DNA of 64,000 bases from Oculina patagonica (GCF_052425735.1 NC_135763.1:33914001-33978000); one strand, 5' to 3'. Shown: positions 27,828-64,000, numbered from the stretch's first letter. Program-made: numbers and translations. The notes: generated by a model from the letters alone, not told the origin.

Positions 27828-30800
27828 ATGGCGTTGAATTATCACTTGTTGTTTAAAATCGTCCTTGTTGGCGATCCTGAAGTCGGAAACGCGGCCGTAT
27901 TACATCAGTCAGCCAGCGACTGCTCATGTCCGTCGACAGTCGGCGTAAATTTCCTCAAAAGGAAATTAGAAATGGGTAAGTTTTGTGGTCTTTTGTGAAG
28001 AGCATCACTTCGAAATTTCGCCTCGACTTGTCATGACTTCATCAGTCTTTTAACAGTTGTATTCCCCTACAAGTTTTGCGTTATTGTTTCAAAGTGCAGG
28101 AAAGACTTTAACTGTTTATAGTTCTGCCCGAAGACAGGCATTTCGTTTGATGCAGATATTTTGCCTGGCGTAAGCGGAATTCATTTAAAAGCTTGTCGAA
28201 AAGCTGTCATCGTACCATCTCCGTTCACGTATTAATCCAGTGCTAGCTATCCGAGGAAATTAAAGTTCGACGTATTTGACGCCTCTAACGTTCTCAAACC
28301 AGACACCCATTTATCCTGTCAGAGTATCTGCATCTCTCTGTATAAATAAATATACGAACATTGTTATTTCGAAATAACTGTTTGAAAGTTCTTTGTAATT
28401 CCAGCGAGTATGAGAGGTTTTTAATCTGAAAGCCAATATTCTGCCTGATGGGGCGGAAGTTAATGAACAAACTTTATCGACAAGCTGTCATTTTAGCTTT
28501 GACACTTATTTTAATTTAACTACTTGTACTTTATTTTTCACTTTAAAACTTCAGATGGAAAGCGAATAAAATTGCAGATTTGGAATATTGCAGGCCAAGA
28601 AAGGTAAGAGAGATGTTTCGAATTATTTGGGCAATAAACAGCTGCCGTGATGTGGGTCACGCGATCGTTGTCACGCATTCAAGCGGTCATTTTGTTAAAA
28701 AATAGAATTCGCGCGACGAAGTTCCAGTTAGGAGAGCACAAGCTATCAATCTCCCTTTCACGAAACTTCCATGAAAAAAGAAAATTTTCAAAGCAAATGA
28801 TGCGAGATTGTGACATTACTAATTGCAGGCTTTTATCTGACGTGTTTTAGTAAACGTTTCAGCTCACCGTACCAGGAAAATACGACATTTAGCACGTTTT
28901 TGTCTCATGTCACGTCATCTCGTGTCACGTGATCCGTTTTTGTGTGGACTTTAAAGTCTACACATTGTTGTCATGCAGTTTTTTCCGATTGGGGGGTCAC
29001 TTTCCGTGATAACTCGCGTTAGTGCTTTCGGAAGTTTTCGACAGTGATCGGAGAATCCGAAGTTTCGGTGAGATGGGCAGCCAAGGCAGTAAACCCAGAA
29101 ATTCGATCAGTATCGAGTAAGTCGCACTTTATTCTTGAATCTAGAAGCCTTTTTTGACACAGCTTTCGAAGAACGTGTGGTGGCTTGAAAGTATACATCA
29201 AGGAACAACTTCAAAGGCAGCGGTGGCGTAGATGAAAAGTGAAATAACAATCACGACGGCTGAAATCTGCATATCTAATGAGCTGAACAACTGCGGTCAT
29301 AGGTCACGTTTCTTGTTTTTCACACTTTTGACTCACTTTCCACAGTTTTTGTTTCTCTGTGCGGCTTGAGCATTTTTGATTCGCATATTAAAACGAATCA
29401 AATGTCTGGTTATTTATTTATTTCAGCTTTGCCAAACACAATGAATGCACAACGAGTTGTATCAAAACAAGTTCGCTGATCATGTTGTTTTACTTGTCTT
29501 GGACTCCGGGATATAATTCACCAGCTCCATTTCTCTCAAGTAGTATATTTAACAAAAGACCGATGTCGAATTCAGGTAGAACTGAACTAAAACATTGTCA
29601 TGAAAAGAATAAAAATAACATCGAACCGTAGAATATGCATATATCCAAACCGTGCGACAAAATAATTTAATTGTCGGTTCAAATAACGTCCTTCGCCGCC
29701 TCTCAAAACACCGACTTCAACTGAATATTTCGTAAACAGAAAAATATATTTCTCCGCCTTTCTACGCAAGCTACTAAGAAATTATTTGTGAAAGCTTATT
29801 GAAAAGTTCTAATTCCAAAAAGGTTAAAAAAGAACTCATTGAAAGAAAATAAGTTTTTCGATGAGTTGTTTACACAAGCTTTACACAAAAAGTAAGGGTT
29901 GTGTAAACAAGCGATGCGAGACAGTTCACATGCTCCACGCAACATTTCTCTTTTTAATGAAAATAGTATCCTATCTTGCTAGCGGTAAGGAAAGGCTTTT
30001 GGTCTAATAACTGCTGTTCTTGTAGGATTCTAGGTTTTTATTTGCATGAAAAAAGGCATTTGTCGTGAACGACGTGACAAAGGGTCACACCACGCTCCTT
30101 CACATTGCGTGACATCTCAAGCGGCAATGGTAACGTTTGTTTCTTGAAGCGACAAGTAATAGTACACTTTGTTCTTCCAACAGTCTTGTAAATAATAAAT
30201 TGATTGACAAGTTCTTTGTTTTTTCGCCTTGTATCTCGAATTACTCGATTCGAAACTTGAAGTTGTTGACTGCTACAGAAACTCATTGATTAATTCATAA
30301 TGTCAACTTTTATTCAAATGAAAGTCCACACATGTTCGCATAGCGGACTCACTTTTACTGTTATTCATCTTTTTGATGACGTGCTGTCAGGAAGGCTACA
30401 GTAACGAACTATTCACAAAACGATGCGAAAAAATGCAAACAACATCGAATGAAAGGTCATAATTTCGTCCTCGAGTAACTTTATGTGCACGTGCTCGCAT
30501 TCAGCGGTATCTTTTTTCCCTCCGATGAACCTTTTATCAAAATCGTCTAACTCAAAGAAAATAATTTGTACACCAAAACTATGTAATTAAAAATATAGGT
30601 CACTGAGCCCTGTTAACAAAATGACGATTTATCTCCCAACCGAGAAAAAGCCGCCATTCTGTTTATGCGAGCGCGCTCACGCGTACAGGCATTCTGCGTA
30701 GTAAGGATGTGTAATGCAAAACTGAGGAATCACTTTAAATGCTCGTTCTTCCTAATGGAAGGGTAGTGAGTGGATGTAACACAACGTGAATAGTCTATCG

Positions 30801-33271
30801 AAACCAGGACCAAGCCTTGGCTTCTGGAAACCTAAACCAATGCCCTGTAATCCTGAGTCGTAATTTCTTACTTCAGCTTTACTAAAGTGTTAGAAAAATG
30901 CTACAGAATGTACAGAACCCAACTGAGGTCGAGTTGATCGTTGCGTGACGACACTCATCTCGTACCCAGATCTCTCACCAAGAGTAGGAGATCTGAGTAT
31001 GGGATTATGACAAAACAATCAACAGCTACTAACTTGACTACGGAACCATACCGTATTTAGTCAAATAAGCGCCGCCCTCGAATAAGCGCCGCATTTGGGA
31101 CAAAAAAGTTAATAAGCGCTGCCCCCAAATAAGCGCCGCAGTCCTGATGCGGCGCTTATTCGAGGAATTCCTTTTAACTAAAACAGCACTACAAAGCCTC
31201 TAAAGCAAACTTGGACATTCTTTCCATCTAAAGCGATGTTTTGCAGTTCAAAGTGTTTGTTTTAGCACTCGCCCATTAGTTTTTATATCCAACATTCTTA
31301 CAATACTTAGTTACGTAAATGTTGTTAAGGCCCCGAACTTTGCCTGGACACCTAGCGCTACTTCTTTTTTTCAGCAGGAGACGAATACTGTCAATCAAAA
31401 GACGCTATTTTCAGTTACTTTAAAGGGTTCGATTCTTTGTGGTGTCCAGATTTTAAATAAGCGCCGCCCTCGAATAAGCGCCGCACTTGAGGAGTCAAAA
31501 ATTTAGTAAGCGCCACGGCGCTTATTCGAGTAAATACGGTATGTATCCTGGCCAAAACTCATCTCCGTTTTTTTTATGTATCTCAACAACTTGAGCTGAC
31601 TGCATATGTTTTAGTTTGACTTCATATTCGGTATCCCCTGTTAATTTTCAAGAATTACACGTCTCAGGTTAAGGCGGGGGTTCACGTGAAAGCCGTTTTT
31701 CCACCGTTTAATGTGGGTTTAATGCGAATATCTCGTTAAATTAGAATTTGAATTTTTAAATTAGTAGATGGACACCAAAACAGTCCCCTGACAACCTGGA
31801 ATGCTCTTGCGTGGGGGTCGACTGTTTTGTGGTGTTTCAAAAACAATTTTCTTTCTCCGTTCTTTTCTTTAAAGGAGAAGTTCACTCCAGAATGGCCATT
31901 TATTTTCTTTACGCCAATTAAATGTTTATACAAAGATATGTTATTCACCAAAATTTCAGAATCCAACGTGTGCTATAACCCTACGAAATCTTTCCCAAAA
32001 CTCGACAACTGAACGCCGCCATCTTGAAGCTGGTAATGTATGCGTGACGTCAAAGAGCTCAGCCTGAAGTTTGGAGGAAAAATTTAAATACTCGAAACTC
32101 CTTTTTTCTTCGTAGTAGCTTTTGTCTGTTAAAATGCTTGTTTGTGCAGCTCCATTTTGCTCAAACAGAGCTCCAAGAAGTACAAAAACCAAGGAATTTC
32201 GACTATTAAAATTTTCTCGCCAAACTTCAGGCTGAGCTCTTTGACGTCACGCATACATTACCAGCTCCAAGATGGCGGCGTTCAGTTGTCGAGTTTTGGG
32301 AAAGTTTTCGTAGAGTTATAGCGAACGTTGGAGGCTGAAATTTTGGTGAATAACATATCTTTGTGTAAACTTTTTATTGGCGTAAAGATAATAAATGGCC
32401 ATTCTGGAGTGAACTTCTCCTTTAAACCTAAAAGTTTACTCAAATTCACGTGAATTCTTTCTTTCTTATGCCAACAGCGTGGCCACATACCATGCCCCCT
32501 GTCCTTTCTGCTACAGTTATTAGGGACGTTCAGATCGGTGAACGAGATAGAGTATACGACTTTAGGAATTCAGTCCAACCAGTTATATTGTTAGAGCCCT
32601 TACTCCTTGCTGTTCCTGAGCAGTTCAAAAGGAGTCTGTCGGTACGGGATTGGTGTGAAATGTGATAATCGAAAGTTTAATGCGTACATGTAGGTTTGAA
32701 AAATCATAATCGTACTCTAATGTGAAGGTCCCCAATCTCAGAGGTGGGGCTCCCACTCTGCTTTCCAACCCCCTCACCGTCTCTGCTGATTCTCTATCCC
32801 ACGAATCTATCCGAGTCGCAGAATGGTAAAATGTTGTAATGTTTTAGTTCCCAGGCCTTAACGACCAGTTACTATCACGGAGCGCAAGGGTTTATGCTTG
32901 CCTATGACGTCACCGACAGAACATCGTATGACAAGATCCCGGAATGGTTGCGCGTTATCGAAACTCACGCCAGCGAGGACTTTCAAAAGATACTGGTTGC
33001 AAACAAATGTTGGTGTAACGAAAGAAACCGCGTAATCGAAAAGAAAGAAGGCGAGAAAATCGCGCGGGAGTACGGCATGCGATACGCAGAGCTGGATGAC
33101 CTGCAAAGCTCGGAGATTGACAGGGTCCTCAAGCTGCTGATTCAAGACATCTTACACAACGCGGGCTCGCATGAAAGAGAGGAAGAAATGGAAGCTTGCA
33201 ATTTCGACGCGGGAGAAGTAGGAAACAATAATAAAGGAGTTGAAGGAGACGAAGAATTGCTTTTAGCTTGA
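27828..33271 (+). CDS. Rab8/10/13-derived protein with degenerate G-boxes (candidate pseudo-GTPase), copy A, 206 aa
   Basis: Exons 27828-27975, 28555-28603 and 32848-33271 join in frame with the same intron positions and phases as the neighbouring Rabs. MALNYHLLFKIVLVGDPEVGNAAVL..STVGVNF..KLQIWNIAGQES..YYHGAQGFMLAYDVT..ILVANKCW..YAELDDL..; no C-terminal Cys. Confidence 0.8.
31051..31539. mobile_element. Tc1/mariner-pogo type MITE (TA TSD)
   Basis: TA|CCGTATTTA...TAAATACGG|TA with AATAAGCGCC subterminal repeats. Confidence 0.85.
31873..32421. mobile_element. Long-TIR MITE with TTAA TSD (Kolobok-type)
   Basis: TTAA|AGGAGAAGTTCACTCCAGAATGGCC...GGCCATTCTGGAGTGAACTTCTCCT|TTAA; ~210-bp inverted arms. 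Confidence 0.85.
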
Positions 33272-36242: not shown

Positions 36243-36911
36243 ATGGAGAAACAGTTCGACTTTTTGTTCAAATTACTTCTTATCGGCGACAGCGGTGTCG
36301 GTAAGACATGTATAATATTTCGATTTGTGGAAAATAAGTTTAATCCAACTTTCATCACAACTATTGGCATAGATTTCAAAATCAGGACGGTGGAAATCGG
36401 TGAGTAGTTAGGATTTTATAATTAACGGGGACTCTGGCTTCTTGAGTAAAGGAATATTGACGACACAAGCTTGAACACTTTTCAGACAGTAACACACTCA
36501 AGCCAATATATTCGAGTCTTTTCTCTTGGCAATGCCAAAGTTATTGCAGACTCACAGTCATTTGTAAATTGTTCGTCGAAACGTTTAAAGGTTAATCATT
36601 GTGTATTTTGATCAGTGATTGTTCATATCATTGTTTACGCAATCGCTATACTGATCTATATTTGTAAATGCTTTAATAACTCAGTCCAGGGTCGAATCCA
36701 AAGAACAGGGTCACACCACTTTAGCGCGCAGTAGGAATACAAACAAGCCGAAAAGAAATCAGCAAAAATAGTCAAATGTAGACTTTAGATCATGATTATC
36801 ATATTTTGCCCCCTACGCAGAAGTTCTTTGAATTCGTCACGCAAAAAGATTGCGTGACAAGCCCAAAGAGCGTGTTGCAGCTTGCATGATTGAAGGTTAT
36901 GCACCTTTTTT

Positions 36912-36950
<39 letters not shown>

Positions 36951-37764
36951 TAACTCCCCCCCCCCCCCCCCCCCCCCCCCAGGTGATTACTTCAGCTTGT
37001 ACAATAACGAATTAATCTGTAATTTAATGCTTATAAATCATGTTTGTTATTATATAGCTAAATGTGTTCCATTGAATGAATATTTCTGTTTCATTTTCGA
37101 TAAGTTTCGAATTCTCCGGGGGAAGGGGGTAGGGGGTAGGAATAGGCAGCAAAGCCAGCTATCACCCAGTATTTTTTGCGCGCGTTGAAAGTGCGCGCTT
37201 TTCACAAGGCCTTCTCGGCATTTATATTCATTTATTCGTTCTATTTTGTGCATCAGGTGGAAAAAGAATCAAGTTACAAATCTGGGACACTGCCGGCCAG
37301 GAAAGGTAAATGAAATCCTTAATTTATATTGAAACAACAACGAAACATTTGCAATAAAGTGCGCATTTTCTTGTAGATTCCAGACCATCACGGCCACATG
37401 TTACCGTGGAGCCCAGGGTATAATGTTGGTGTATGACGTCACCGACGAAAAGTCTTTCAAGAATATTTCAAAATGGGTGCAAAAAACACAGGAGCTCGCC
37501 AACCCTAACGTTCAAAAGATGTTGGTTGCGAACAAATGCGATCTCAAAAAACAAAGACTGGTCACAAGAGAGAAAGGAGAACTGCTCGCACAAGATCTTG
37601 ACATTCGATACGCGGAAATTAGCGCTCTGTCAAATTTGAACGTAGAAGATGCATTTGCCACATTGACACAAGACGTTTTAAATAATTTTGTTTGTTCTTC
37701 CGCGGAGAGTTGGGCCACTTTAACGGTAGAGGAGACGACTAAACAGCCTTGCTGTGCACAATAG
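36243..37764 (+). CDS. Rab8/10/13-family small GTPase, copy B, 197 aa
   Basis: Exons 36243-36399, 37257-37305, 37377-37764; [35 protein letters not shown]-terminal CCAQ. Confidence 0.93.
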
Positions 37765-37948: not shown

Positions 37949-37950
<2 letters not shown>

Positions 37951-39079: not shown

Positions 39080-40689
39080 ACTGCAGAGCTGATAGAAGGG
39101 TCTGAATGGGTAAAATGAGAACTGAGATTTGGGCAAATTTCACTGAGAAAATGGGATTTGGGTCACTGGGACTACGAATCTCACACAAAAATAGAACTGG
39201 GACCGAGATTTGGAAAATCGGGAAACAAAAGCCCCAGTCAAAGCCTGAATAATGATTATTATTAAAAACTAGCAATGGTATATTGCTATTCGACCTGCGT
39301 TCTGATTGGTAACGCGCAATGGTATATGAGCTCTTATATCATCAAAGTAAGTACCACCAACGTTGGTTAGGTTAAAATTACAAAAACTGAAATTAAAATT
39401 TTGCTAAGAAAGGGTACGAGCGCAAATATGAATTAATCACAAGAAACCTCTGTTGCTTGAAGAAATAGCTGCCGTGAGACGTGTACCTGAAATCGAAATG
39501 ACATTGAAAATGACATAAAAAGCATAGCACTACAGACGTATCATGCAGGGACGAGGAGTTTCATCAGCGACTGAAGTCGTGAAAACAAGTGGAAATCAAA
39601 TGTATCTTTACGATGTAGTCATGCAAAAGAAGTTAATTCGTTTCGCTTGAAAACTGTCAGTTTATTTTATCCAAAGAGTGGGTTGAATAAGAATCAAAAA
39701 TTGTTTTCTCGAATCTTTGAGTGTGACATATTTTGTTACTCATGGAATATTGTTAGGCTTTTTGGCCTGGAATTTATTGCAAGCTTACACGTTGTCACCA
39801 AGAATAAAAAGTTTATTTACGTGCTGTGCCTGTATTTTTGAGGTCATTTCTGGTAACCGTCTATTGCCTTCAATACCCGAACTCGTTTATGTGTTATAAA
39901 TGTAAGTGTAAACTTTAATAGTCATCTGCCCACAGAGATTTCAATAACGATTTACAATTAAAAAACAAAACAAACAAAACTACTCAACTCTAATATAGAC
40001 AAATAAAATTGAAATTAAATGAAATAATGATTAAAAGTTTAAAAGAAGATGGTTCCTCAGGTTCGTTTTAAAAGAGTTCAGAGATTTAGCGTTTTTTTTT
40101 ATTTTAATATCATCAGTTCCATATGTTTACGGCTTACGGCTGAATGTTCTTTGGCCTGCTGGGGTCCTGAACAGCAGAATTTGCAAGCTTTGATGTTGGC
40201 GGGTTTATTTTATTTTATTTTTAAGTACTGGTTTTTAGTGGCGCACCCCCTAATTACTTACCAAAATTGGGGCGGCCCACACCTTGAGTGGATGGCCGCA
40301 GCTACAAAATTAAGCAAGCGTATAGAGTTTCTTGGAATTATCTCTAGCAGTCGCTAATCAGAGAGCAATTTGTTAGTCATGACCATAAAGAAGATAGCAC
40401 CTAGTTTGGTCCTTGTGGCACGCCTGTTTTCGAGGGTAACAAGTCCGAAAGCGTCCCTACGACTCTCACTGCTTGGTTGGACTCCGCTTATTCTAGATTA
40501 TTGCTGTTAAAAACTAAGTAAACAAACAAACAAAGGCGGGGACAGTCTAGTGCGAAATATTACCAGTCTAAATTTTGAGATCGGGAAGCAATATTTCTCA
40601 CGTGATTCCATTTGGGACAAAAAGTTCACGTGACTATGCAAACACGCTTGTAAGTAACGCAATCCGCTGTCACATGCCTGCTACAAAAC

Positions 40690-40761
40690 ATGGCGAAAAA
40701 TTACGATTACTTAGTTAGAGATAAAGATAGTGGTGTAGGGAAGACTTGTATACTGATTTAA
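40690..40761 (+). pseudogene. Rab exon-1 remnant, copy C
   Basis: [23 protein letters not shown]; preceded by the same ~65-bp upstream block as copies D (50611) and E (57541); internal deletion and premature stop. Confidence 0.85.
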
Positions 40762-42403
40762 GAGAAAATCCGCCAGGACTTCGAGTAGTTATTGGACAAA
40801 ATTATGTACCAAAACTACTTACACCTGATTGCAAGCTTTTGTGTTACTGCTTCAAATATCTTATCGAAAGAAATCTTTTCTAACAACACCAAACATCGAA
40901 AACTAATTTCGAAGTTCCACTAAATTCCCATGAATCGCTTAAAAGATGTGAGCTTTTGACCATAGCTTGTGAACTTTGAATATCATTTTCTCAGACTCTG
41001 ATAAGAAATTGTTGTACCAGAATTATTTACACCTTATTGCAAACTTTTTTTGTTACTGCTTCAAATATCTTATCAAAAGAAATCTTTTCTAACAACACCA
41101 AACATCGAAAACAAATTTGGAAGTTCCGCTGAATTCCACTGACTCGCTTAAGACGAATTTACAAAATGGCTACACGTGCGATTTTGCCTATACCTTGTGA
41201 ACTTTGAAATTTATTTTCTTAGACTCTGATAAGAAATTGTTGTTGGTGTTATCACGGATAATTACTTACATCTTTACCTTTTATCAAGGGTAGGAAATAA
41301 CGCAATAGGATTTAAATTATTCTGGTTCCTAGTGGATTCCGTCTTAATTCGTCAAAAACACCTAGCTTTCTGTCCGACTTCGATCCGACTTTGACCGCTA
41401 CTATTGGATCACAATTCCAGATTAGATTTTAGGAACTCGGTAGAAAGTCCTGACAATCAATTAAAATCAATGAAAATTCAAATATCGAAAATCACTCAAC
41501 ACAGTGGCTTTGATTTTTATTGATTTTTAATATCAATCAATTGATTACTATCAGGAGCCCATGTTACTATTTATTTTAATTGATTACTATTGATTCTATT
41601 TATTATTGATTCTTATTGATTGAAATCGTCGGGTATAAAGTAGATAATGACCCATGACTCATGACTCACGCATGATGAAATATACGTACACAAAGCGTCA
41701 GGTCGGTTGTTTAAGGGTGCGTTTCTTTGGGAAAATCCAAAATTGGATTATTAATCTCAGATCACACGGATACTTTGCTCCCAAAGAAACGAAGAATCCG
41801 AAAACGGATTGTTTACGCGTCGCTATTTATGCACGTTGGTTCGCTGTGATTGGTGCATCCGACTAACAGATGCTGTTCCCTCAGAGGTCCGCTTTGTAGT
41901 TGAACGGCTGTTATGCTTTCTGATCGTAGGTATCCATGCTTGAGTCTTGTGTCATGTTTTTTTTGGCGCCCCGAGCCCTTCAAAAGCCCTTATTTTGCGA
42001 GATCATTTAGCGACCGGTCAAAAAAAAAGAGAGGAAGGGAAGGGAGAACTGCCTTCTCTCTCTCTTCTATTGGGAAAAGGACGGATAAGGAAGGAAGAAC
42101 GAAACAGAGGAAGGAAGGAAAAGAGAAAAGAAACGCGCGCGATGAAATCCTCTTTTATTTGTGTAGTTGCCCCCGCAGGGTTTTGGGCCCAGAGGCCAAA
42201 ACCCGAGGAGGCACCTTAGGAGTGACAATAGAAAGCAAGGGACCGCGGACGAAAATGCTGCTGTGTACGTAGGAGCTGGCGACAGCTCTAATCAGCCAAA
42301 AATAAAAATACAGAGACAAGAAAAGCAAGGCTGACACTACGTAGAAATGAAAAAACCTTAACGGGACAACGACATGATAGAGTCCAAACTGAAAGTTAAA
42401 AAT

Positions 42404-50610: not shown

Positions 50611-51723
50611 ATGGCGAGCGCGAAAAACTACGATTACCTCGTCAAGATTGTGTCTGTCGGAGATTTGGGGGTGGGGAAGTCTTCTATAGAAATACGATTC
50701 GTCGAAAACAGGTTCAGTCCGCATTTGTTCTCGACAATAGGCTGCGATCTCAGGATTAGATTTCTGAAGCTCGGTAAGTAGATCATGCATGACTCATGAG
50801 GAAATATATACAGCAAGTCGGTTGTTAGTTTTGCGATGTCTCGAAATACCCAGAAAATAGTCAAGGAAAGAAATATTCTTTTAATGTTTGTTTCAATTTC
50901 TGAAGATGATTTAAATATTTTCGCCCATCCATAGATCACTGACTTCCTGTGAACACATTTGGAACTAATGTGAAATTGACATTAATTCGCAATTGTTTCG
51001 ATCAAGAAAGATTGTTTCGCCTCGAGGCTTCGTCCTGTATTTTGTCTAAGTTTTTTTATTCATATCACATACGTTTTAATGCTAGAACGATCTTTGCTTA
51101 TTGTTTCTTTCGGCTGAGAAAAATCACGCACCGTTTAGGGAAGGTGCGTTTTTTTTCCTGGCGAGGGAGGACTAGCATGGGGACATCAGTGAAAGGGAGG
51201 GGAGGGTAATAGCTCTTTATAAGCTGGCTATTATGGAGAATTCAAGGGGAGGGTCACACATCTTTCCCAGTATTTTTTAATGAGAATTTTGGTGATTCTG
51301 CTTTCCATTTTTTTAACAGATGAAGTTCTTCTTTCCCCTACTTTGATTTAATTTGTTGTATTACTATAGCTGCAAGGATACATTTCTACATGTATATAAT
51401 TATGCCATAGCACATAGTTTTCTCGGAGGACTTGTGTACTTTTCCGTCCTTATCAAGACATACAATTTCTTGTTGTTGACTATTCACTGCCTGATCTACT
51501 GAGTCGTTTAGTTCTGCGCTCCACCCTATAAAACGTAAACTACTCACTATAAAATCATAAATGTAAACAATGTTGTGAGGTTTCTACAGCATGGAACATA
51601 TATGTACAATGATGTAATGTATATGAAATTTTTCATATATGAACTGCGGATGGATATGAAAGTGATAAATGATCGTCGCAGTGAATTTCCAATTTAAGAA
51701 ATTGGATGCATCGCACCGGTATC

Positions 51724-51757
<34 letters not shown>

Positions 51758-54355
51758 TGAACTTTTTTAGGCTTCTTTATTCCAATTGCTTAAATTGGAA
51801 ATTCACTGCGACGATCATTTATTACTTTCATATCCATCCGCAGTTCATATATGAATTATTTCATATACATTACATCATTTCACTCCTCTCACGGGTAAAA
51901 ATGAATATGAATTCACAATTGACCTCGCTCCCAATGTGTGGCTTCAATAGCTCAGTTAGTAGAGCATCGCACCGGTATCGCGGAGGTCACGGGTTCAAAT
52001 CCCGTTGAAGCCCTGAATTTTTTTCAGGCTTCTTTATTCCAATTACTTAAATTGGAAATTCACTGCGACAATCATTTATCACTTTCATATATGTACAATG
52101 TAGTAGTGAAGGAAGGGTCGTACTTTTGTCAGTCACCTAAAGGTTGAGGGGGGGGGGGGGGTCAGGAGTTTTTATCATTAAAATGCAGGGGAGGTCCAAC
52201 CCTTTTATTGAAAAGAAAAAAATTCCTAGCCACCCCCCCTCCCCAACCCCAAGAAAAAACGTACCTTCCCTTATTATCTAACAAATGTATATAGATCCCG
52301 GCCTTCCCCCAGCCAACGGGTTCCCCCAGGATTAAAGAGTTTCTCTCAGATTTTAGAAAGGCTTTCCTAGGCCAAAAAACCTATTACCGGTATCACAATA
52401 TGCTTGATAAAAGTAAAAAAAGTAAATGTTGTAAATTTGTCTGTGGTTGTATGTAAAGCGATTGATTTGTTTGTTAACTTTTGATTATTTTTTTAGGGGA
52501 AAAGATAATCAAGCTACAAATTTTCCATACTCAGGGACAGGAAAGGTAAAGTAGTCTCTCCGAGATAACATGAGTTTTACTACAACCCCCCCCCCCCCCC
52601 ACCGGGGATGATTCTGTCTATTGACACGGCTGGAAATGCAGTAAATACCCTCTATCCTCCGCAGAGGTTCCCGATGGGGCATTCGTTGTAAAAATTCGCT
52701 GGGCAAAGTGAGTGCAGGCGCAAAAGATAGAGATCCACTTCGCTCCAATCTCGAGCCCAGAGTCCGTCAGTCAGCGGTATTGGACGGATGTCCCGGCGAC
52801 CTTACCGATGAGCAACCGCTGACAGATCGAGGAGCCGGGGGACACTCTGGGCTCGAGATAGACTTTCTCATTTTATTTCGCTTGCGCTCTTTTCGTACAG
52901 CGGACTCTCCCCACCGAAAACCTCTCTGGGGAGCCTCTGCGGAGGAGAGAGGTAAATACCGTGTGGCACTCACTTTCTGCAGATTCTAATTCTTTTGCCA
53001 AATCTCGAACCCAGATCTTCTCAACCCTCGGAGAGAACATCTGGTAATTATGGGTTAGAGACTGTTGTGAGTGTTTTGTTGACAAATACACGCACGCGCT
53101 GGTCGCACAATAAACGAGAAAATTTCAATACTGCACTGCTGGCCTCACAATGAACTCGTGCAGTATTGAAAGTCTCTAACCCATAAATATTGCTCGCGTC
53201 AAATGTGTCAGAAGTCTGACACACAACGCGACTACGCATGCTCGGCAATTTTTTGGATGAAAGGCTCACTTGGCCGCTGTAAATAGGTCACGGTAATTAA
53301 CGGCAGTCAATCTAGACTACAAACAGAGAAATTTGGCGTACCACAAGGATCTGTTCTTGGTCCTCTACTTTTTGCATTGTTCTGCAGCGATCTGCCAAAT
53401 ATAACCGATGGTAGTGAAGGAGAGCTACACATGTATGCTGATGACACAACCATCTACGTCGCCGCCACAAGTCCGGACAAGGTAGCCACCGTGCTAAATT
53501 ACATCTTACGGAAATTATATCGCTGGTGTTGTCAACATTGATGACACCACACCCGGAAAAAAACGAATATATGCTGTTATATCGAAGATCGTTTACTGGC
53601 CCTTTACAAAGCATTAAGCTTGGGGAAAATAACATTAGGCAAGGACAGTGCGCTCAAATAGAACATTCATGTCAAAGAACTGTGTAAACGTTTCACCCAG
53701 AAACTGAACCTTTTGAGATCATTGTATTTTTGCCAATTCCTGCGAGAATTGACTTTTATTTTAAAGTAATTTTACCATCTTTTATGTACGGTATGGTAGT
53801 CTGGGGGTCGTGTGGCTCAACACTTTTCAGGGACTTAGAAAAAATCCATGTGCATGCCACCAAGTTAATTTTCGACTTAGACTGGTTCACCCCATCAGAA
53901 GACGTACTGCGTCAAGCAAAGTGGATACTATTTAGGCAAATGTACATCCGCAGGGTACTTTGTTTTGTCTTCAAATGTGTATCTGGAGGTGTTCCTGTCC
54001 AATTACAACGTGCGGAAACAAAGTTTGCATCATCCGCGCGCAAATGCTGAAGCTTTCCATCAGCCAATCAGATTGGCGAACTGAACGCATTTGACCAGAT
54101 GTGTACTACCGTGGTAAATAGGCATCTGGGTACGAGATTATCTTTTGCCATATGGTGCAGTTTCCTTCACATGTGCCAGTTTTTTTCCCGCCAACACGCT
54201 CCCACCCAACCCAACCTCCAGTTGTTTCCCGTCACAGCTACCTGTTTTCCCGCCATAATACCGGTGTTGTCTGTTGTGTCCGTCAGTTTCCAAGTTTTCT
54301 CGCTATAAAGAGTGACAGCACAGTTGGTTTTTCCGCCATCAATCAATCAATCAAT

Positions 54356-54430
<75 letters not shown>

Positions 54431-55735
54431 CGATTTAAATTAAGTAAAAAGAGAAAACTTCCATATCATATCGACGTCCGTCAAAACTTCTATTTCGGTT
54501 TCCCGCTGCATGAAAACCTGTGGGACAGAGGTCCAAAATTCATAAGTTTGAAAAAAGTATTTCTCAGTATTTGCACAGGTAGCCCAGGTTCGATATATGA
54601 GTAGCTTATTTATGATGACCGTTGCATTATTCTGATTATTAAGTAATTCGAGCGATTTTCATTATTACAAGGATTTGTATGGGGAAATAAATAAAACCGA
54701 AAAAGTAACTGTTGAATTACAATATAAACTGCTCATCTGAACTCCTGTGTTGATTTGTTTGAGTTACGGCTCCAACGGTTTCTTCTCCATATATGGAGAA
54801 AAAACCGTTGGGACCGGCAAAGAAATCGCTCCAAATCCGCTTTTAAACCACACAGTTCACACAAAGAACAACATAGGAGTTCAGGTGAGTGATTTTTATT
54901 AGAATTCCAATGTTATTTTTCATAATTTTCGGCTTTATTTATTCCCCATACAAATCCTTATAAAAATGCAAATCGCTCGAATTATTATTATTACTGGCAC
55001 CAAGGGTACATTTCTAACAGTCAAGTACTATTTTAAAATTAGAGGTGATTTTGTTTTCAGTTCGAGCTGAAATCACATTCCATTTTGTCCCCTAGATTTG
55101 ATTTTATGAGAAAAGATTTCTTCCGTGGGGCCAGTGAGGCTCATGTATAAAATTGTGACAATAATAGGCTTGAAATGAAGTACAAAAACAAAACTGTCAA
55201 AACTTCTATTTGCAGAACAGCCTGCAGAACAATTTCTATTTAAAGTACTATTTTAAAATAACTGATGATTTGTTTTCAGTTCAAGCTTATATTTCATCCC
55301 ATTTTGTTCTTTAGATTCAATACCCTCCCAACAGCTTATTACCGTGGGGCCAGGGGTATCTTGGTGGTGTATGACGTCACCAACGAGAAATCCTTTCATA
55401 ACATCTCAAAGTGGATGAGAAAAATCGAGGAGCACGCGATCGAGGATGTGGAGAAAATTCTGGTTGCAAACAAATGTGACCTTGAGGAAGAGAGAGTAAT
55501 TACGAAAGAAAGAGGAGAGATGCTAGCCCAAAATCACGGCATTCGATACGTGGAGACCAGCGCACTTACAGGCGAAAATATCGAACAAGCTTTTACTCTT
55601 CTAACGCAAGACATTTTGAACAAAGTACTCTTGACGCCTGTTAAAGAGGAGAATATGAAAGATGGGAAGGACAAGAAGAAAAGAGTGAACTTGAAGGGAT
55701 CAAGCTCGCCTCATAAGTCATGCTGTTGTCATTAA
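50611..55735 (+). CDS. Divergent, chimeric Rab8/10/13-family GTPase, copy D, 210 aa
   Basis: Exons 50611-50773, 52497-52545 and 55315-55735 in frame; GDLGVGKS, TIGCDL, QIFHTQGQER, NKCD, ETSA, C-terminal SCCCH. Confidence 0.85.
51138..52270. mobile_element. PIF/Harbinger-type MITE (TTA TSD) in Rab D intron 1
   Basis: TTA|GGGAAGGTGCG...CGTACCTTCCC|TTA; absent from the homologous Rab F intron (~61540). Confidence 0.8.
51612..52085 (+). repeat. tRNA-like tandem + inverted repeat insertion with 15-bp flanking direct repeat
   Basis: Cloverleaf-like 51940-52012; ~256-bp period (51708/51964); ~51608-51706 is inverted relative to 51781-51879; CATATATGTACAATG at 51597-51611 and 52086-52100. Confidence 0.75.
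52650..52951. mobile_element. MITE with 9-bp TSD and a nested smaller IR element
   Basis: CTCTATCCTCCGCAGAGG...CCTCTGCGGAGGAGAGAG; TSD GTAAATACC; inner ATCTCGAGCCCAGAGT/ACTCTGGGCTCGAGAT. Confidence 0.7.
53230..54010 (+). pseudogene. Decayed LINE reverse-transcriptase fragment in Rab D intron 2
   Basis: GVPQGSVLGPLLF (~53335-53375), YADDTT (~53454), downstream FYFKVILPSFMYGMVVWG; multiple frameshifts. Confidence 0.8.
54338..54429. repeat. (ATCA)n microsatellite
   Basis: About 22 ATCA units. Confidence 0.95.
54644..54988. mobile_element. Fold-back MITE-like inverted repeat
   Basis: TAATTCGAGCGATTT..AAGGATTTGTATGGGGAA mirrored by TTCCCCATACAAATCCTT..AAATCGCTCGAATTA. Confidence 0.65.
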
Positions 55736-57476
55736 AAAGTTCTATGAATGTTCACTGTTCTACCCAATTTTCCAGAAATAGGCCCTATCACAGTTTTCGA
55801 CGCCATTTTGACGAGTAGGCAAAGCGGGTAGATATTACAGTGTTTGTACGGGAATCCGACGGCAAATATCTTCTAGAAAAATTGAATTCTGAACAACTCA
55901 TGAATTGTAAAGTTAAAATACTAGGGAAAAGTTTTTATTCGAATGTATATGTAGTTGGGCTAGAAAGCGTTCAGTTACGTTTTTAATTTCCCATACATTT
56001 GTTTATATTTTTCTGCATGATTGACGCGGTTCGCGGGAAAAATTTTTACTTAGCTAAGACATAGAACACGAAGTTTTCTTATCAGTTTCATGTAGCGCTT
56101 AATAAATTAAATTAATACAGCCATTAATTGCATCTGGTCGAAATGTTTAAATTAAAGGGCCTTTTAAAAACCTAAATGACAGATTTTTATACCCTTTCGT
56201 AACCTAAACTAGTGGAATCCCAACCCTTTTATATACCTAAAGCTTGAAATAGGTACACCTTTCAGACAGAGTCTCCCTGCCCTAGTCCCTTCTCCTCCTT
56301 GTAGGTATCCTGAAATTTGTGATCCAGCTGTCATTTTGTGATTTGTTGGCCGGAAAAGTGCAAACAGATTGCCAATTCTATATATTGACTAAACGCAGGA
56401 GCTAAACGTCGTATACAACGAACGCCGATCCGTGCTTTTTTTTTGGTCCAAATCCGTCAATCCGCCACTATTTTCGTTTCAATCCAAATATGCATTCAGT
56501 TAAAAACTTTGTGTGATATAGTTTCACTGTAAGAGACGTAGTTGTTGTTTTTTTATGCCAGTTTTTTTTTTTGAGATGTTTCGTTTCATTGCTTGTTTTA
56601 GCGACAATTCACGCGCAATTCTGCAATATACAGACCGAACTTTTGTTTCGTTTAGTATCAACGAGCCTAACTTCCTGCCATGTTAAGTCCGGAATCCGGA
56701 CCAAAATTATTCGCTTATGCTCGATTCCGCTCGATGTATCCCAAAAATCCACATTTCGAGCAACCGCCAACCTATTCACCTCGCCCCCACCCCCCCCCCC
56801 CCCAGCATAAAGCTGGTAGCTATAATGTGCATAACAGAAATTTATATTAAAATTTGTACATAATTTGTATTTAAACGATTTCAAATTTCACATTTCCCTG
56901 GTTCCAGAGGTCTTTCTTTTCTAAGCAACGAAAACGACAGCACTCATGATCATGAGAGGGGAGGGGGGGGGGGGGGGAAGGTACAGAATAGGGAAGATTG
57001 AGAAATGGCCAAAAAAATTAGGGAGGAAAGACAACATCGTTCCCAGGGCTTTTCCCTTGGTGATTTGGAACGGGCTAAAAAAGTAGGGAGATTGGAAAAA
57101 TTTTAGCTTAAAAAGTAGGCAGGAGGAAGAATTTAGCACGAAAAGTAGGGAGGAGGGAGAAATTGGCGCAAAATGTAGGGAGGAGGGAGAAATTAAAGGG
57201 AGTTTACCCTCCTGTCCCTCCCCTATCTTATGACTGGTCCGCCCTGAAGAAACGCAGCAAAATATACAGAATATAATTCAAAACCTGTATGATGACAATT
57301 TATATGCCATCAAAAGGTGGCTGGCTGAAAAGGTGCTACAATTAAAATGAACATTTGCCAAGAAACGGTACGAGCGCGAATGGAAATTGAAATATTTTGA
57401 ATATCGGGAAGCATTTGCCAGCGAATAGAACAGTACTCACGTAACCTGAAATCATGCCCTCCCTACCAGGTTTTAC

Positions 57477-57540
57477 TCACGTGATTATGCAAACTCACTT
57501 GTATGTAACGCAATCCGCTGTCACATGCGTGTTACAAAAC
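57477..57540 (+). promoter_or_regulatory. Conserved upstream block of Rab C/D/E with E-box-like sites
   Basis: TCACGTRA-TATGCAAAC-..-GTAACGCAATCC-CTGTCACATG-..-ACAAAAC-ATG at ~40626, ~50547 and 57477; GTCACGTAAC upstream of Rab F (~60700). Confidence 0.5.
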
Positions 57541-59871
57541 ATGGCGAGCGCGAAAAACTACGATTACTTGTTCAGGCTTCTGTTGGTCGGAGATAGCGGT
57601 GTGGGGAAGACTTGTATACTGATTCGATTTGTGGAAAATACCTTCAGTTCCTCATATATATCGACCATTGGAATAGATTTCAAAATCAGGACACTTGAAC
57701 TTGGTGAGTACAATTATACAAATCAGTTGTACGCAGATTCAAGCGGTGAAGAAATTTGCGAACATTTAGGTTTTAAGCCATTCTGAGACAGCGATTCCAG
57801 ACAGAATCTTACTCAATCATTCGTTTATTCACAAATAAGCAGTGAAGCTGTAGTTTTGGTTTGAGCGAATTTTTAAGACAAGAATTTTGAGCTTGTCGCC
57901 GGCAAGGACATTGTAGGTGATGTTACGTGAACTAATTGCATACTATAAGCCACTTGTGGGTTCTAACTGTAGAACTCAAATGACAACTAGTGTTAGTACA
58001 TTCATTTCTAAGGAATAACTTGCTTTTAAAGCGCTCGATGAAAATCATTTTGGAATTATAAAGAGACAGGGTCAGTCAGGGTTTTTAGGTATACCATATA
58101 CATAGGCATTTTAAACTGGGTATACTGTATTTTTACCTAAAATTCGGCCTTTTATGGGTATAAAGTATACTGTGTTATTTCACATTTTGGTATTTTGCAT
58201 GATTTTGAGGGGAAATTTTGGGTATACTGGGTACATGCTTTTCAGGTATACTGGTATACCACTTACCCCCCTGGCCGACCCTGAAGAGAACAAAACATTC
58301 GTTTTAATCCATCGAGACTCTTGCATACTTTAAGCGCGTTTCAGCATAATTTTGAAAGTGAAAGTGACTTTGTTGATTTCTCGCAAGGTTAGCGCTTTTC
58401 TCCCTGTTCTTAGAAGTTGCAATTTAGTTTCAGGAAAACGTTAACAGTACATACCACACGTTTTTTACAAGCAGAAGGGATTAGTGCTATGACCTTGGAA
58501 TGGGAAAATAATGTGAAACTATTCACTTCCGGTCACGGGACATTGCAAAAGGTCCGGAAATGCTGGTGACCTTAGTCATACGTTGTACAAGATTTTTGTC
58601 AATTGTTGTTTTCGTTTTTATTTAATTTCTAGATGGAAAAAAGGTCAAGCTACAAATCTGGGACACTGCTGGCCAAGAAAGGTATCAACGGAAATGTGAT
58701 CAAAGTGTTCGCGCGAAAACCGCGAATTCACACTTATTTCATTTGTGTCGTCACGCAACGCTCTTAGAAGCATTGTGTGACGGTTGAAATAACGGCTGCG
58801 TTGGAGATTAAAGAGACTGTTAAAGTAGCGCGAGTCAAACTGCTACGAAAATGACACCTTGTCAAGTCTGCTCAGCCAAGTCTGGTAGCTGGCGGGCTCT
58901 TTCGCATTTTCTCAGCGTCTTGAAATACCGGCGCTCGCCGCGATTATTTTGCCTTCTCAGTAGACAGTCTAACGTGACAGTGTAACGTAAATCCAATTCA
59001 CTGAATCGCAGCCAAAATAAGAAACGTTTGCACACTGACTCAGGGGGGGCCCCCCTTGGTTAAAATCGGGGGGATAAAGCGGAATTCTGACAGTCATTTT
59101 TATTCGAATAAATCTATTTAAAAAAATACCAAAAAATGGAATGCTAGTCCATCCATTCACCGGCGTATAAATGGATGTCCATCTATACCGGTGGAGTAGA
59201 GTATCTTGTCCAAGAAGGAATTTTCACAGTCTCTCTATTTTTAAGCGCTTAAGAACGAGCGCGAAGCACGAGGGTGTGGAGCCGGGGGAGGGAGGTGGGG
59301 GGGGGGGGAGGTGGCGAGCGACCGGTTCTCTTGAGATCCTTTTTCCCGCGTTCAACGATCAAAGAGAAGTACGAGAAAAATAGAGGGCTGTGGACAGTTT
59401 ATGACCAAGAACACCACAGTTTTGGGCCCTCTCAAGATTACTCCGCTAAATTGTTTTATTGCTTTTCCTAGATTCTATACAATAACATCCACCACTTACC
59501 GCAGAGCCATGGGCATCATGGTAGTGTATGACGTCACAGATGAGAAATCCTTCATGAACATCACAAGATGGATCAGCAAAATACGCGAAAACGCTGACAA
59601 AAACGTGAACAAAATCCTGATTGCCAACAAGTGCGACCTCGAAGAAAAACGCAAAATAACGAGAGAAAGAGGCGAAGAACTGGCTGAAAATCTTGGAATT
59701 CCTTACGTAGAAATGAGTGCTCTGGCAAGCTCAAACATCGACGAAGCATTCATTACTTTAGCAAAAGACATTTTGAGCAGGGTGTTACAGTACGGCGAAG
59801 AAAGAAGCGCAGAATTTGGGGGCGACAAACAAGGGCTTGATGCATCAACAAAGTCTTGCATGTCATGTTAG
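57541..59871 (+). CDS. Rab8/10/13-family small GTPase, copy E, 203 aa
   Basis: Exons 57541-57703, 58633-58681, 59472-59871; [35 protein letters not shown]-terminal SCMSC. Confidence 0.93.
58067..58283. mobile_element. CAGGG-terminal MITE with 6-bp TSD
   Basis: Same family as 50179-50394; TSD AAGAGA (58061-58066, 58284-58289). Confidence 0.85.
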
Positions 59872-60738
59872 CTCCAATATATATTATTATATCATCTGTT
59901 TAGAAATTGAAGTTATCCTCCTGAAGTTATGGAGTTCATAATGCTAGCTTTGTGGTATATTCGTGAGATGACTACCATGGACATATTTATTCGATGTAGA
60001 CTGAATAAATCTACTTTTAAATTGCTCAATTTCTTTTTCCAAATCCTCCCTTATCCTATTATTAGCCTTTATTTGTTACGCAACGCTTCTACCTACCGAA
60101 AAATTGCGTGACGCGCCCAAAAAGGACTAGATCGATTCTTTCCAACGAGTTTTAATATAGCTTTACAAGTAATAGATTGGACAGAGTTCCCTTAGCTTCC
60201 TGGTTGAGTCAGAAAAATAAACGAACAACAAAAAAAAACTTTTATAAAAATTATTGGTTGACCAGATTCAGTGATGGAACATTTTTATCCACGTTCGAGC
60301 GGTATATTGTTTAAATCTCTTTCCTTTTTCCCCGTTATAATATTTAGTTTGATTTTATACTAAATCAAGCCATTATTTTGGACGAGCCAGACACAATCGC
60401 CTAAAATAACATGACCAAAGTTCAGTGTGAATTCCACTACAGCTATATATACAGGACCAGCTTACGAGAGCGACGGCTTTTTGGCCGGACGTAATGCTTA
60501 TTCCCCAGTTTGCGCGCTCGGCTTGCACAGCATCTAATATACGCAAAGATTTTCATGTAAATCAGCCTTGAAAAAGTCTCTCGCTCTGGCTCTTCGTGCT
60601 TCATTTTGTTTATTTAGCCGCGCGTGTGCTATGCGCATTTCCGGTTCCGGTTTGCGAACTAGTAACCATTCCCCACTCCCCAAGTACACGACCCTGACCG
60701 TCACGTAACACAGCGCAAATTTGAAACAATCTCTCGAA

Positions 60739-63730
60739 ATGGCGAAGCCGAATTTTGACTTGTTTTTCAAGCTTCTTCTCATAGGCGACAGCGGAGTTGG
60801 GAAGACGTGCATAATATTTCGTTTCGCCGACAACACATTCAATCCGACTTTTATTTCGACTATTGGAATCGATTTCAAGATTAGAACACTGGAACTCGGT
60901 AAGTAGACTGAAGTAGATTATGAGAAAATATACACGAAGCGGCAGGTAGCTTGTTAAAGTTGTTCGAATGTCTCGAAATATTTCGGCGCTTAAGAAGAGA
61001 ATGAAGAAAAATTATTCACGTCTGTTTGAAACCAGACATGGTAGCCGGTACCTGTATTCATATTTAATGTAAATAACTATATTTCATGGAGTGTTTGCCG
61101 GGAAAACCGCGCAAGTTTTTGTACCGAATGTAATGGCATTTATATATTCACAGATGACTTGAAGTTTGCAATTGCGGTGTCACTTTTGAACATTGCTATT
61201 TACGCAACGAAAGAGAATCGAGATGTCGATTTCTGCTTTCCGACTTCTAGGATATATCGAAAACATAGTCAAGCAAAACATTTTATTCTTTTATTAATGT
61301 TTGTTTCAATTTCTGAAGTCGATTTAAATATTTTCGCACATTCATGGATCATTGACTTCCTGTGAACACATTTGCAACTAATGTGAAATTGACATTCGCA
61401 ATTGTTTCGATCACGAAAGATTATTTCGCCCCAAGGCTTCGTCCTGTATTTTGTCTAAGATTTCTATTCAAAGCACATAAGTTTAAATGCTAGAACGATC
61501 TTTGTTTATTGTCTCAGTCGGTTGAAGGAAAACACCCACCGTTTGTTATCAAACGAGTGTAGATTCTCGTTCTCTATTCTGTATATTGTTATTATGTCTT
61601 CAATGGCATGACATCTGTCACTGCCTGCAGTCAAATGGTTTCTTTTTATTTTACAGTTAACATTAAAAATCATTTTCTGCTATAGCGATAACACGCAAGA
61701 ATAGGAATGCACGATTTTCGGCTAATAAGGAAATGTCTCAGCGAAATATTACGAATTGTTCCTCGGTGAAATAAAAATGACGTCAGCGCCTCAGTGAGCA
61801 ATATTGCATAATTGATGGCTTCCCGTCGAAGAATTATCCAAATATTACGCTAAGCTACGCTTATATATTCAAGCTTATTGATCGGCATATTGGACCTTTG
61901 AAGTTTTCTTGTGGTGTATTAATGTTTGTGTCACGAATCTCGCCTCCTGTGGTTTATAAGAATTTATTGGACTCAATCAGTGTCCACAAGAGTACCGTAT
62001 TTATTCGATTAAACGCCTCCCTCGAATAAACGCCGCACATAAGGCCAGAAATATTAATTAACGCCGCCCGCGAATGATGCGGCTTTTATTCCAATAATAG
62101 AGTCAAGAAGCAAATCCAGTAACAATCAAGTTTGATCAAGCCTCAAAAATATTTTCTTGATTGTGACAAAATGAAAATAACTTTTTAGACAAGCACTAAA
62201 ACATTTTTCTGTTTTTAAAATTCAAATGTTCAGTTACCATACTATTGTTAGCAAGAAGTAAATTGAATTTTAAATAAACGCCGCCCTCGTATAAATGCCA
62301 CCCTCGAATAAACGCCGCAGTCGAATCACAAAAAATTCAATAAACGCCGCGGCGTTTAATCGAATAAATACGGTAATCGATATCTAGTTTCTCCTTAGCT
62401 CTTCTTACACTATCAGTACGTTCTCAAAAAGAAAGGTGATGAGAATAAAGAATTAATCAACTAGGAGATATTGTCTTGATCTACCATCAAATTCTCTCAA
62501 GTTACTTAACTCTCCCCTGTCCACCACCGACGGAGTTTTCCATCCCGACAGGAGTGGAGAGAGGTGGGTTCCTGTTTACGCTCCTGGCATTACAAGTTGA
62601 GGTTGTTTTGCTGCAAATAACAAATGCATACTTTGATCTATAAAAAAAGTTTCTGGGATTTTGCTGTTGTCTTGCACACCGACCGTGATTTTGTGAATAC
62701 AGTTGAACCCCTATTAAGCGGCCACCCTCGGGGAAATGGCAACTGGCCGCTTAATAGAGGTTGGCCGCTTAATAGGGGTTTGTCAGAAATTAGCATAAGG
62801 TCTTTTTAAAAGGTAACATTATTTCAATACAAAATAAGGTGAAAAGGAATAACGAAATCACAGGAAGACGACAATAAACCTGTGTTTGAATGATTTTATC
62901 GGCCGTCACGGTCTGAGATTGTTGGAAATTAATTTAAATATCGTATATAACATTCTTATTGGCCGCTAAATAGAGGTAAAAACAATAGGAGAACGCTCAT
63001 CGGGGCGGCAGAAAGGTGGCCGCGGCCGCTTAATAGGGGTGGCCGCTTTAAAGGGGTTATATTTACAGTATTTTACTGACAATATTTTCGGGTCTTTAGT
63101 AACTGGCCGCTTAATAGGGGTTGGCCGCTTAATGGGTGGCCGCTTAATAGGGGTTCGACTGTATTTCGTTGCTTTTCTTCAGCTCTCAGCCGGCCAAGCA
63201 AATAATAAAGCTCGACCTAACTCTTTGCTTCTTAGTGAGAAAATGGGAGAGAAATTGGTGTATTACGAATCATTCTCGCGAGATCCCCGCATTTACTTGT
63301 GTAAACACACCTGTTAAGCAACGTTTTTTTACCGGATATTTGTTAAGCAACGTTTTTTTACCGGATATTTTCACGGATTTGTGCATTTTTTTTATTATGA
63401 AACCGTAGGATAGATTTAATACCGTTGCGAGCTCCACGGTTTAGTTACGTTTAGTAATCCAACTTTGTGTTTGTATGGAAATGCAATGAATGCAGTTTTA
63501 ATAGTTACCAGAAGGACGAAAGATTTTAGAATAGAAATGACTTGTATTTTTATACTGCTCTTTCTGTAATTGTGCTCAATGTAAGTCATTTCTATTATTA
63601 AATCTTTCGTATTTCTTGCAACTTAAATGTATTCCTTCCATCCTTATCGATTTAATTGTTAACGTTTGATTATTGTTTTAGGGGGAAAGAAAATCAAGCT
63701 ACAAATTTGGGATACTGCGGGACAAGAAAG
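60739..63730 (+). CDS. Rab8/10/13-family small GTPase, copy F (3'-partial; exon 3 beyond window)
   Basis: Exons 60739-60898 and 63682-63730; [69 protein letters not shown]. Confidence 0.92.
61995..62373. mobile_element. Tc1/mariner-pogo type MITE (TA TSD)
   Basis: TA|CCGTATTTATTCGATTAAACGCC...GGCGTTTAATCGAATAAATACGG|TA. Confidence 0.85.
62700..63161. mobile_element. Tc1/mariner-pogo type MITE (TA TSD)
   Basis: TA|CAGTTGAACCCCTATTAAGCGGCCA...TGGCCGCTTAATAGGGGTTCGACTG|TA with internal GGCCGCTTAATAG repeats. Confidence 0.85.
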
Positions 63731-64000
63731 GTAAAGTAGACTTTCCGGGAGTACAAGATTTTTATTTCCCTCCGCCCGGCCATGGATGATACTGTTAATC
63801 GACAAGGCTAAAATCCGGTGAATATTCGATGGTTTCCCACAGGTCGTGTGCAATGGCATTTGTCCACCATAATGTGCAGTGTCATTATGCTCCAGTTTTT
63901 TCCCGCCAACATGTCACCCGACAGTTGTTTTCCCGCCATCATCTTCCCTATTCGTCACAGCTTCCAGTTGTTTTCCCGCCATAATGCTAGTATTGCGTCC

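Follow-up and report, generated by a model that had tools for sequence, protein, structure and literature searches.

The 64,000-nucleotide stretch of DNA analyzed here, referred to below as the window, corresponds to C6:33914001-33978000 of a chromosome-scale contig of the coral Oculina patagonica and carries a tandem array of Rab GTPase genes, designated A to F. Following a tblastn search in which the three exons of the clearest copy (locus B), read by three-frame translation, served as the query, six same-strand Rab loci were identified between bp 27828 and bp 64895, approximately 900 bases beyond the end of the window. No seventh Rab locus was found, as tblastn was blank both in bp 1-27800 and in the 40 kb downstream of F, and the Rab locus count in this assembly is exactly six. 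Coordinates are collected in Table 1.

Splice-aware models constructed from the junction sequences give A, B, D, E and F three exons each and open frames of 197-210 codons. Exon 2 is exactly 49 nt long in all five of these non-remnant copies. Intron 1 (phase 1) interrupts the codon that follows EL at approximately codon 54 and intron 2 (phase 2) interrupts the Arg codon of QERF at approximately codon 70; both positions are identical in the five copies, and all of the introns are bordered by GT..AG. The models of A, B and D match deposited GenBank proteins, and the protein deposited as "Rab-13-like" is that of locus E, although the deposited model is 221 aa in length and begins at an upstream ATG. 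The predicted proteins have different C-termini: ELLLA without a Cys in A, CCAQ in B, CCCH in D, CMSC in E and CCSR in F. A preliminary description of this DNA had claimed at least six same-strand loci, with shared intron positions and a 49-nt exon 2 in the five non-remnant copies and with C-termini that differ (none, CCAQ, CCCH and CMSC in the A, B, D and E models, respectively), and on each of these points the gene models agree with it.

Table 1. Rab loci of the O. patagonica array (positions are bp of the window, counted from its first base).
Locus	Exons	Strand	Product	Remarks
A	27828-27975, 28555-28603, 32848-33271	+	206 aa	ACROYT_G023548
B	36243-36399, 37257-37305, 37377-37764	+	197 aa	ACROYT_G023549
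C	40690-40755, 41373-41441	+		exon-1 remnant in two pieces, located by tblastn
D	50611-50773, 52497-52545, 55315-55735	+	210 aa	ACROYT_G023551
E	57541-57703, 58633-58681, 59472-59871	+	203 aa	deposited as "Rab-13-like"
F	60739-60898, 63682-63730, 64478-64895	+	208 aa	exon 3 lies past the window (L003:478-895)

Rab8 is a Rab of the last eukaryotic common ancestor and Rab10 is a metazoan duplicate of Rab8. For every copy in the array, the best matches among solved structures are Rab10 and Rab8A, well above Sec4, Rab1, Rab35 and Rab3: exon 3 of F scores 154 bits with Rab10 (E=1.2e-44) and 136 bits with Rab8A, A scores 152 and 151 bits, respectively, and B and E score approximately 244-248 bits with Rab8A and 233-240 bits with Rab10. 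A and D also match the Pfam Ras family (PF00071) with scores of 130.8 bits (E=4.6e-38) and 185.2 bits, respectively, against a cutoff of 21.6, and precomputed PF00071 matches are available on B, on E and on F-type orthologs of other species. The array genes are accordingly placed by their sequences in the Rab8/10 group, as had been proposed.

One alternative explanation is that the copies are nothing more than the coral's orthologs of Rab8, Rab10 and Rab13 (or RabX4) that happen to adjoin. The automatic public names of these genes (Rab-8A/8B-, Rab-10- and Rab-13-like) would fit with this, as would the data set of Klopper et al. (2012; PMC3425129), in which the Nematostella counterpart of F is filed as "NeVe_Rab10" beside a canonical "NeVe_Rab10_2". 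However, O. patagonica and all of the hexacorals sampled encode a separate canonical Rab10 that is at least 90% identical across hexacorals. In O. patagonica this gene has six exons (C3:6.33-6.35 Mb), with terminal exons 97-100% identical to the hexacoral Rab10 cluster, while the canonical Rab8, assembled from C2:43.14 Mb, is recognizable by the hallmark stretches FSEDAFNSTF and AFFTLARDIK.KMDKK. Both of these genes, which lie on chromosomes other than that of the array, share introns after approximately codons 43, 63, 83, 109 and 141, and neither of the two array introns coincides with any of them. In a maximum-likelihood phylogeny built from 37 proteins with IQ-TREE (LG+C20+F+G4), in which a Rab11-like gene served as the root, the array forms a clade apart from Rab10, and canonical Rab8 likewise falls outside of it. 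According to Klopper et al. (2012; PMC3425129), Rab13 arose in vertebrates as a duplicate of Rab8, and the "Rab-13-like" names on array genes are automatic labels only. Based on these results, it is extremely improbable that the copies are such orthologs; the preliminary description was correct in setting them apart from Rabs found across the Metazoa.

RabX4, a Rab8-derived family reported in Nematostella (PMC3425129), was considered separately as an identity for F and was rejected. When the NeVe_RabX4 sequence from the supplement of that study was compared by eye with the F type, the two were found to differ, and NeVe_RabX4 instead matches an exon 1 that is head-to-head with O. patagonica Rab8 (bp 1110-1238, minus strand, of G000:C2:43141001-43150000, or L015).

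In B, E and F, the G1 (GxxxxGK[ST]), G3 (DxxG), G4 (NKxD) and G5 (SAx) motifs are all intact. The C-termini of B and F, like that of D, are canonical geranylgeranylation motifs, and E and its orthologs end in CxxC or CxC. The RabF4 motif of E is YRRA. F is the most Rab10-like of the copies and carries a VCPP motif and a polybasic stretch ahead of its CCSR end. Full-length spliced transcripts of the B and E types are present in other corals. Intron 1 of F contains an element of approximately 165 nt (bp 63001-63166) that is found in at least 40 copies with 93-99% identity over all of the large contigs; this is a young high-copy short repeat of SINE/MITE (short interspersed nuclear element/miniature inverted-repeat transposable element)-like character.

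Four of the loci have orthologs in other species. Last-exon searches and genomic loci identified E-type orthologs in Stylophora, Acropora and Porites, while B-type orthologs, all of which end in CCxx, were found in Porites, Acropora and a related coral (ENA assembly ERZ25067872). F-type orthologs with the same tail as F occur in Porites and Montipora and in the sea anemones Actinia, Actinostola and Nematostella. A-type orthologs occur in Orbicella, Pocillopora, the azooxanthellate Desmophyllum pertusum and the related coral. The B, E and F types are represented in both stony-coral clades, Complexa and Robusta, and the A type has so far been found only in Robusta.

Gene order is also conserved. 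In the related coral, all four of A-B-E-F are encoded on the same strand in a span of 18.6 kb, and neither C nor D is present. Porites evermanni carries B(+), E(-) and F(+) with the same three-exon structure, and in Acropora spliced E and B frames lie tail to tail on single transcript contigs, a convergent arrangement that fits the Porites layout. Just downstream of P. evermanni F is a second exon-2-like piece (L009:23139-23192) with flanks like those of F exon 2, which is a partial local duplication. The introns of the F type were read as genomic DNA in Porites and Actinia only. Both intron positions and the 49-nt exon 2 recur in the F gene of Actinia, which contains one further intron; it has no Rab neighbor within 10 kb, and the gene downstream of it is collinear with O. 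patagonica sequence at 79.7-89.3 kb, that is, 15-24 kb beyond F.

The tree recovers this grouping into types. Monophyly is recovered for each of the A, B and E types (100/99-100), B groups with E (95/96), D is sister to O. patagonica F (95/92) and the scleractinian A, B, E, F and D proteins form one clade (95/91), which in the best tree is joined by the anemone F type. Shared derived characters agree with the tree: G5 is SAL rather than SAK in all B, E and F types, ANKCD replaces GNKCD in all scleractinian types and a VCPP-polybasic-CC tail is found in all F types.

Synonymous divergence (dS) among A, B, E and F is saturated. Because of this saturation and because other species have orthologs, an assembly duplication or haplotig artefact was ruled out as an origin of the array. 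Between O. patagonica and the related coral, where dS is approximately 0.35-0.45, the ratio of nonsynonymous divergence (dN) to dS ranges from 0.04 for F through 0.11 for B and 0.13 for E to 0.25 for A, and these four genes are under purifying selection. Their tails differ between types and are stable within each type (CCxx in B, CxxC or CxC in E and, in F, a polybasic run followed by CC or CCxx). The saturated dS, the low dN/dS values and the stable tails together indicate that the core of the array consists of four old, constrained genes and is not a churning array.

The two remaining loci are of a different kind. Locus C consists of two exon-1 pieces split by a tandemly duplicated insert, the second piece containing an in-frame stop, and neither exon 2 nor exon 3 is present at this locus. 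Its 5' block (bp 39621-39779 and 40619-40758) is a copy of the D and E 5' regions; in a self-blastn comparison, bp 40619-40710 match bp 50540-50637 at 89.8% and bp 39621-39779 match bp 49788-49945 at 88%. C is clearly dead. Self-comparison of D shows matches to F in intron 1 (84.6%), the exon 2 block (75.9%) and intron 2 with exon 3 (up to 89.9%), and matches of the D upstream region and first ~100 nt to E (82.6%) and to the C remnant (89.8%). D is a young mosaic, in which the promoter and the first ~35 codons are E-like and the remainder, introns included, is F-like. The dS between D and F in exon 3 is 0.23, below the species-level dS, which agrees with the absence of D from the related coral. 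For the same exon, dN is 0.065 on the D branch versus 0.002, nearly all of the nonsynonymous change falling on the D branch. The N-terminal part of D is heavily rewritten (GDLGVGKS, switch I IGCDL and switch II FHTQGQE), and its G3 motif, HTQG, has lost the Asp. Based on these features, D may be either decaying or changing function.

Several repeats lie in and around D. Between C and D is a 1.07-kb near-perfect palindrome (bp 42309-43379; 99.7% inverted self-match) with identical open reading frames (ORFs) on both strands. Intron 1 of D contains an inverted repeat (80%) and a tandem pair (95%) at bp 51608-52090, with ORFs that repeat the peptide HRTGIAEVTGSNPVEALNFF; this is probably a short retroelement insertion. 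In intron 2 of D, ORFs at bp 53300-54050 include a YADDTTIY stretch suggestive of a reverse transcriptase fragment, with no Pfam match at E<=0.01, and are followed by an (INQS)n-coding microsatellite at bp 54312-54443.

The array had been described as a product of birth and death and as a lineage-specific, diversifying module. In its strong form, this explanation holds that the locus is a rapidly turning-over array of this coral lineage with continual births and losses. D is what such a process would produce, since it is absent from the related coral's array, is sister to O. patagonica F and is an E-like/F-like mosaic with accelerated protein evolution; the decayed fragment C and the extra exon-2-like piece after Porites F can be cited in the same sense. 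The four remaining genes do not conform to it, however, as their dS is saturated, distant stony corals carry orthologs of each of them with the order unchanged, their dN/dS is low and their tails are conserved within types though different between types. We therefore consider continual turnover of the array to be unlikely. D and C are the only turnover seen, both of them as O. patagonica-lineage events, and it is to these two loci that birth and death applies, A, B, E and F being old ortholog groups found in the same order elsewhere. Similarly, lineage specificity stands insofar as these are not metazoan-wide Rabs, whereas diversification is at odds with conserved type tails and with purifying selection on A, B, E and F.

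To assess transcription in O. patagonica, RNA contigs from three runs in two studies were compared over bp 55200-61100 (D exon 3 to F). The three runs behave as RNA, with an intron depth of zero. All three runs show E with both introns spliced out exactly at the GT..AG sites that had been predicted. Coverage of F exon 1 extends into F exon 2, and contigs with D-specific bases cover D exon 3 together with its 3' untranslated region. Expression is thus borne out within this interval for E (spliced), F (exon 1-2 junction) and D (exon 3 transcribed). One contig from run X1 joins F exons 1-2 to D exon 3 and has the look of trans- or back-splicing, but its bases are those of F as far as a 50-nt stretch shared identically by D and F and those of D beyond that stretch, and it was rejected as a k-mer assembly chimera.

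Locus A is different from the other copies in that its G1 (GDPEVGNA), G3 (WNIAGQE), G4 (NKCW) and G5 (LDDL) motifs are all altered. In every species examined, the A type has G3 NIAG and G4 N[KN]C[RHW], each with the Asp lost, G5 [DN]DL, and SS or ST in place of the RF that follows switch II. The Ser/Thr position of G1 varies freely (S, A or C), and the P-loop Lys is additionally lost in O. patagonica A. No Cys is present among the last 12 residues of the A type in any species examined; the tail is acidic and ends in [EK][EM]LLL[GA] or a similar sequence. The altered motifs are common to O. patagonica, the related coral, Orbicella, Pocillopora and Desmophyllum. In the tree, the stem branch of A is very long (2.19 changes per column) and is followed by short branches within the type, a pattern that suggests a burst of change and then constraint. 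The preliminary description had suggested that the array could relate to symbiont phagosomes, calcification or cnidocyte secretion. Because A also occurs in the azooxanthellate D. pertusum, photosymbiosis is not a requirement for this member, which speaks against a strict symbiotic function for it. Intron 2 of A contains a 559-nt self-complementary foldback segment (bp 31868-32426; 85.9%).

Losses of this extent raise the possibility that most copies are non-functional pseudogene relics and that only one or two of them work. A lacks the G1, G3, G4 and G5 residues and a lipidation site, the switch II Asp of D is lost and C is clearly dead. Nevertheless, A retains a 206-codon frame, canonical splice sites and the fold signature (Pfam Ras), its motifs are altered in the same way in five genera or more, its dN/dS is 0.25, and full-length spliced A transcripts are found in Orbicella-like samples. 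The motifs of B, E and F are intact, with dN/dS values of 0.04-0.13, and E, F and D exon 3 are transcribed. It is thus highly improbable that most of the array is relic. From the motif losses shared across species and the dN/dS value, A is better regarded as a candidate pseudoGTPase.

Based on these results, we propose, with a probability of roughly 80%, that the locus is an old, conserved tandem cluster of a hexacoral-specific subfamily of the Rab8/10 group, with two recent additions in the O. patagonica lineage. The founder is the F type, which occupies a syntenic locus in both stony corals and sea anemones and which is Rab10-like, with the SAL G5, the VCPP-polybasic-CC tail, its own two introns and the 49-nt exon 2. 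In stony corals, the B, E and A types lie beside F in the fixed order A-B-E-F, and D (F body, E-like 5' end) and the C remnant arose later, in the O. patagonica lineage only. Because all of their nucleotide-binding motifs are intact, as are their catalytic and switch residues, B, E and F are predicted to be working, geranylgeranylated Rab switches that cycle between GTP and GDP. The hypervariable tail is the usual determinant of Rab membrane targeting, and the basic tail of F is similar to tails that direct small GTPases to the plasma membrane. As B, E and F differ mainly in the hypervariable tail and lipidation motif, they probably differ in target membrane, the basic tail of F being likely to bring it to the plasma membrane. 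A has lost its Mg/phosphate and guanine contacts along with the lipid anchor, but is retained under purifying selection; it is most likely a soluble, nucleotide-independent binder (decoy or scaffold) of partners of the Rab8/10 type.

Certain observations weigh against this proposal. The A type was not found in Complexa, and Porites has no A within 10 kb upstream of B; for this reason, the age of A is uncertain. The B, E and A types were not found outside Scleractinia among the matches listed in word-based searches, an absence behind which there are no whole-genome scans of corallimorphs, zoanthids or octocorals. The node joining anemone F to the coral array is only moderately supported (79/99.5), the position of the array clade relative to Rab8 and Rab10 does not resolve in the tree and the Rab8 reference in that tree is a single sequence, O. 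patagonica's own. Expression evidence in O. patagonica is limited to D, E and F, and no RNA contig joins D exons 1-2 to exon 3. Finally, the functional statements (the membrane targets and A as a decoy) are inferred from sequence.

A more ambitious version of the proposed cluster, which we regard as distinctly improbable, would treat A-B-E-F as one stony-coral secretory module built on the hexacoral-specific Rab10-like founder. Three lipid-anchored switches, sent to different membranes by their tails, would be regulated by a soluble, nucleotide-independent A, whose acidic tail ends in a dileucine-like ELLL and which would sequester guanine nucleotide exchange factors, GTPase-activating proteins or effectors that they share. 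The whole would be linked to a trait peculiar to corals, for example skeleton-forming exocytosis. The wholly new exon-intron structure of the founder might have originated by retroposition and a later acquisition of introns.

Rab GTPases define membrane identity, and lineage-specific Rab gains usually mark new trafficking routes. Our searches of the literature yielded no account of the subfamily, of its gene structure, of a conserved coral cluster or of a pseudoGTPase member, and nothing relevant on coral Rab tandem arrays; already known are the Nematostella F type, which is in a 2012 data set as Rab10, and the fact that lineage-specific Rab duplicates are common. When 1.84 billion representatives were searched by profile with the B, E and F types, most of the matches were fused multi-Rab gene models and Rab8 representatives, with neither further relatives of the array type nor named references among them, and in an ESM Atlas look-alike search with the Actinia F type, the Rab subfamilies were not separable. 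The analysis presented here defines an anthozoan Rab subfamily for which the public "Rab-8/10/13-like" names mislead, and shows how it expanded step by step, from a single gene in sea anemones to the fixed cluster of four in stony corals. It supplies clean gene models and features by which the subfamily can be diagnosed (its introns, the SAL form of G5 and the motifs of the tails), and corrects the view that the whole array is in rapid flux, which is true of D and C only. It also opens testable questions, including which cell types use B, E and F, to which membranes the tails direct them and whether A acts as a pseudoGTPase regulator.

Other Rab duplicates are found elsewhere in the O. patagonica genome. 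Two intronless Rab genes on C1 (G000:C1:704359-704868 and G000:C1:1723114-1723620; L016 and L017) are possible retrogenes; one is 61% identical to Rab10 and falls in the Rab10 clade on a long branch, and the other is Rab1-like (56%). Three tandem Rab11-like loci at G000:C11:4380483-4404480, two of which (C11:4380528 and C11:4391208) are identical over the matched part, are another local Rab duplication.

Among previously described systems, the closest for comparison are the Rab8 and Rab10 genes of other animals. Rab8 has the most complex duplication history in metazoans, and the data set of Klopper et al. (2012; PMC3425129) includes other divergent cnidarian Rab8-like copies (NeVe_Rab8_2/5/6), some of them with damaged G3 and G4; that study describes no subfamily, gene structure or tandem cluster of the present kind, and no coral B, E or A types. 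F resembles Rab10 (human RAB10, PDB 5szj/5lpn) in its switch II ERFHTITT, in the DIL..PV.EE stretch after the GTPase core and in its last exon, which is 63-68% identical to those of animal Rab10s, and all of the G motifs are retained in B, E and F. The array differs from Rab10 in its G5 (SAL for SAK), in the ANKCD (for GNKCD) of the scleractinian copies, in its tails and in its two introns, which lie at other codons and include none of those of Rab10/Rab8. Rab8 (human RAB8A) is of the same supergroup and is the best solved-structure match for E and B, but it has the AFFTLARDIK.KMDKK tail region and Rab10-type introns, both of which are absent from the array members.

For A, the appropriate comparison is with pseudoGTPases and non-prenylated Rab-like proteins, such as CENP-M, the pG domains of p190RhoGAP and proteins of the RABL2/IFT27 type. 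Membership of A in this class is a prediction from its sequence: like these proteins, it retains a Ras-family domain without the nucleotide-contact residues or a lipid anchor and is under purifying selection. A differs from them in that it is a recent derivative of a Rab10-like gene, situated inside a cluster of active paralogs.

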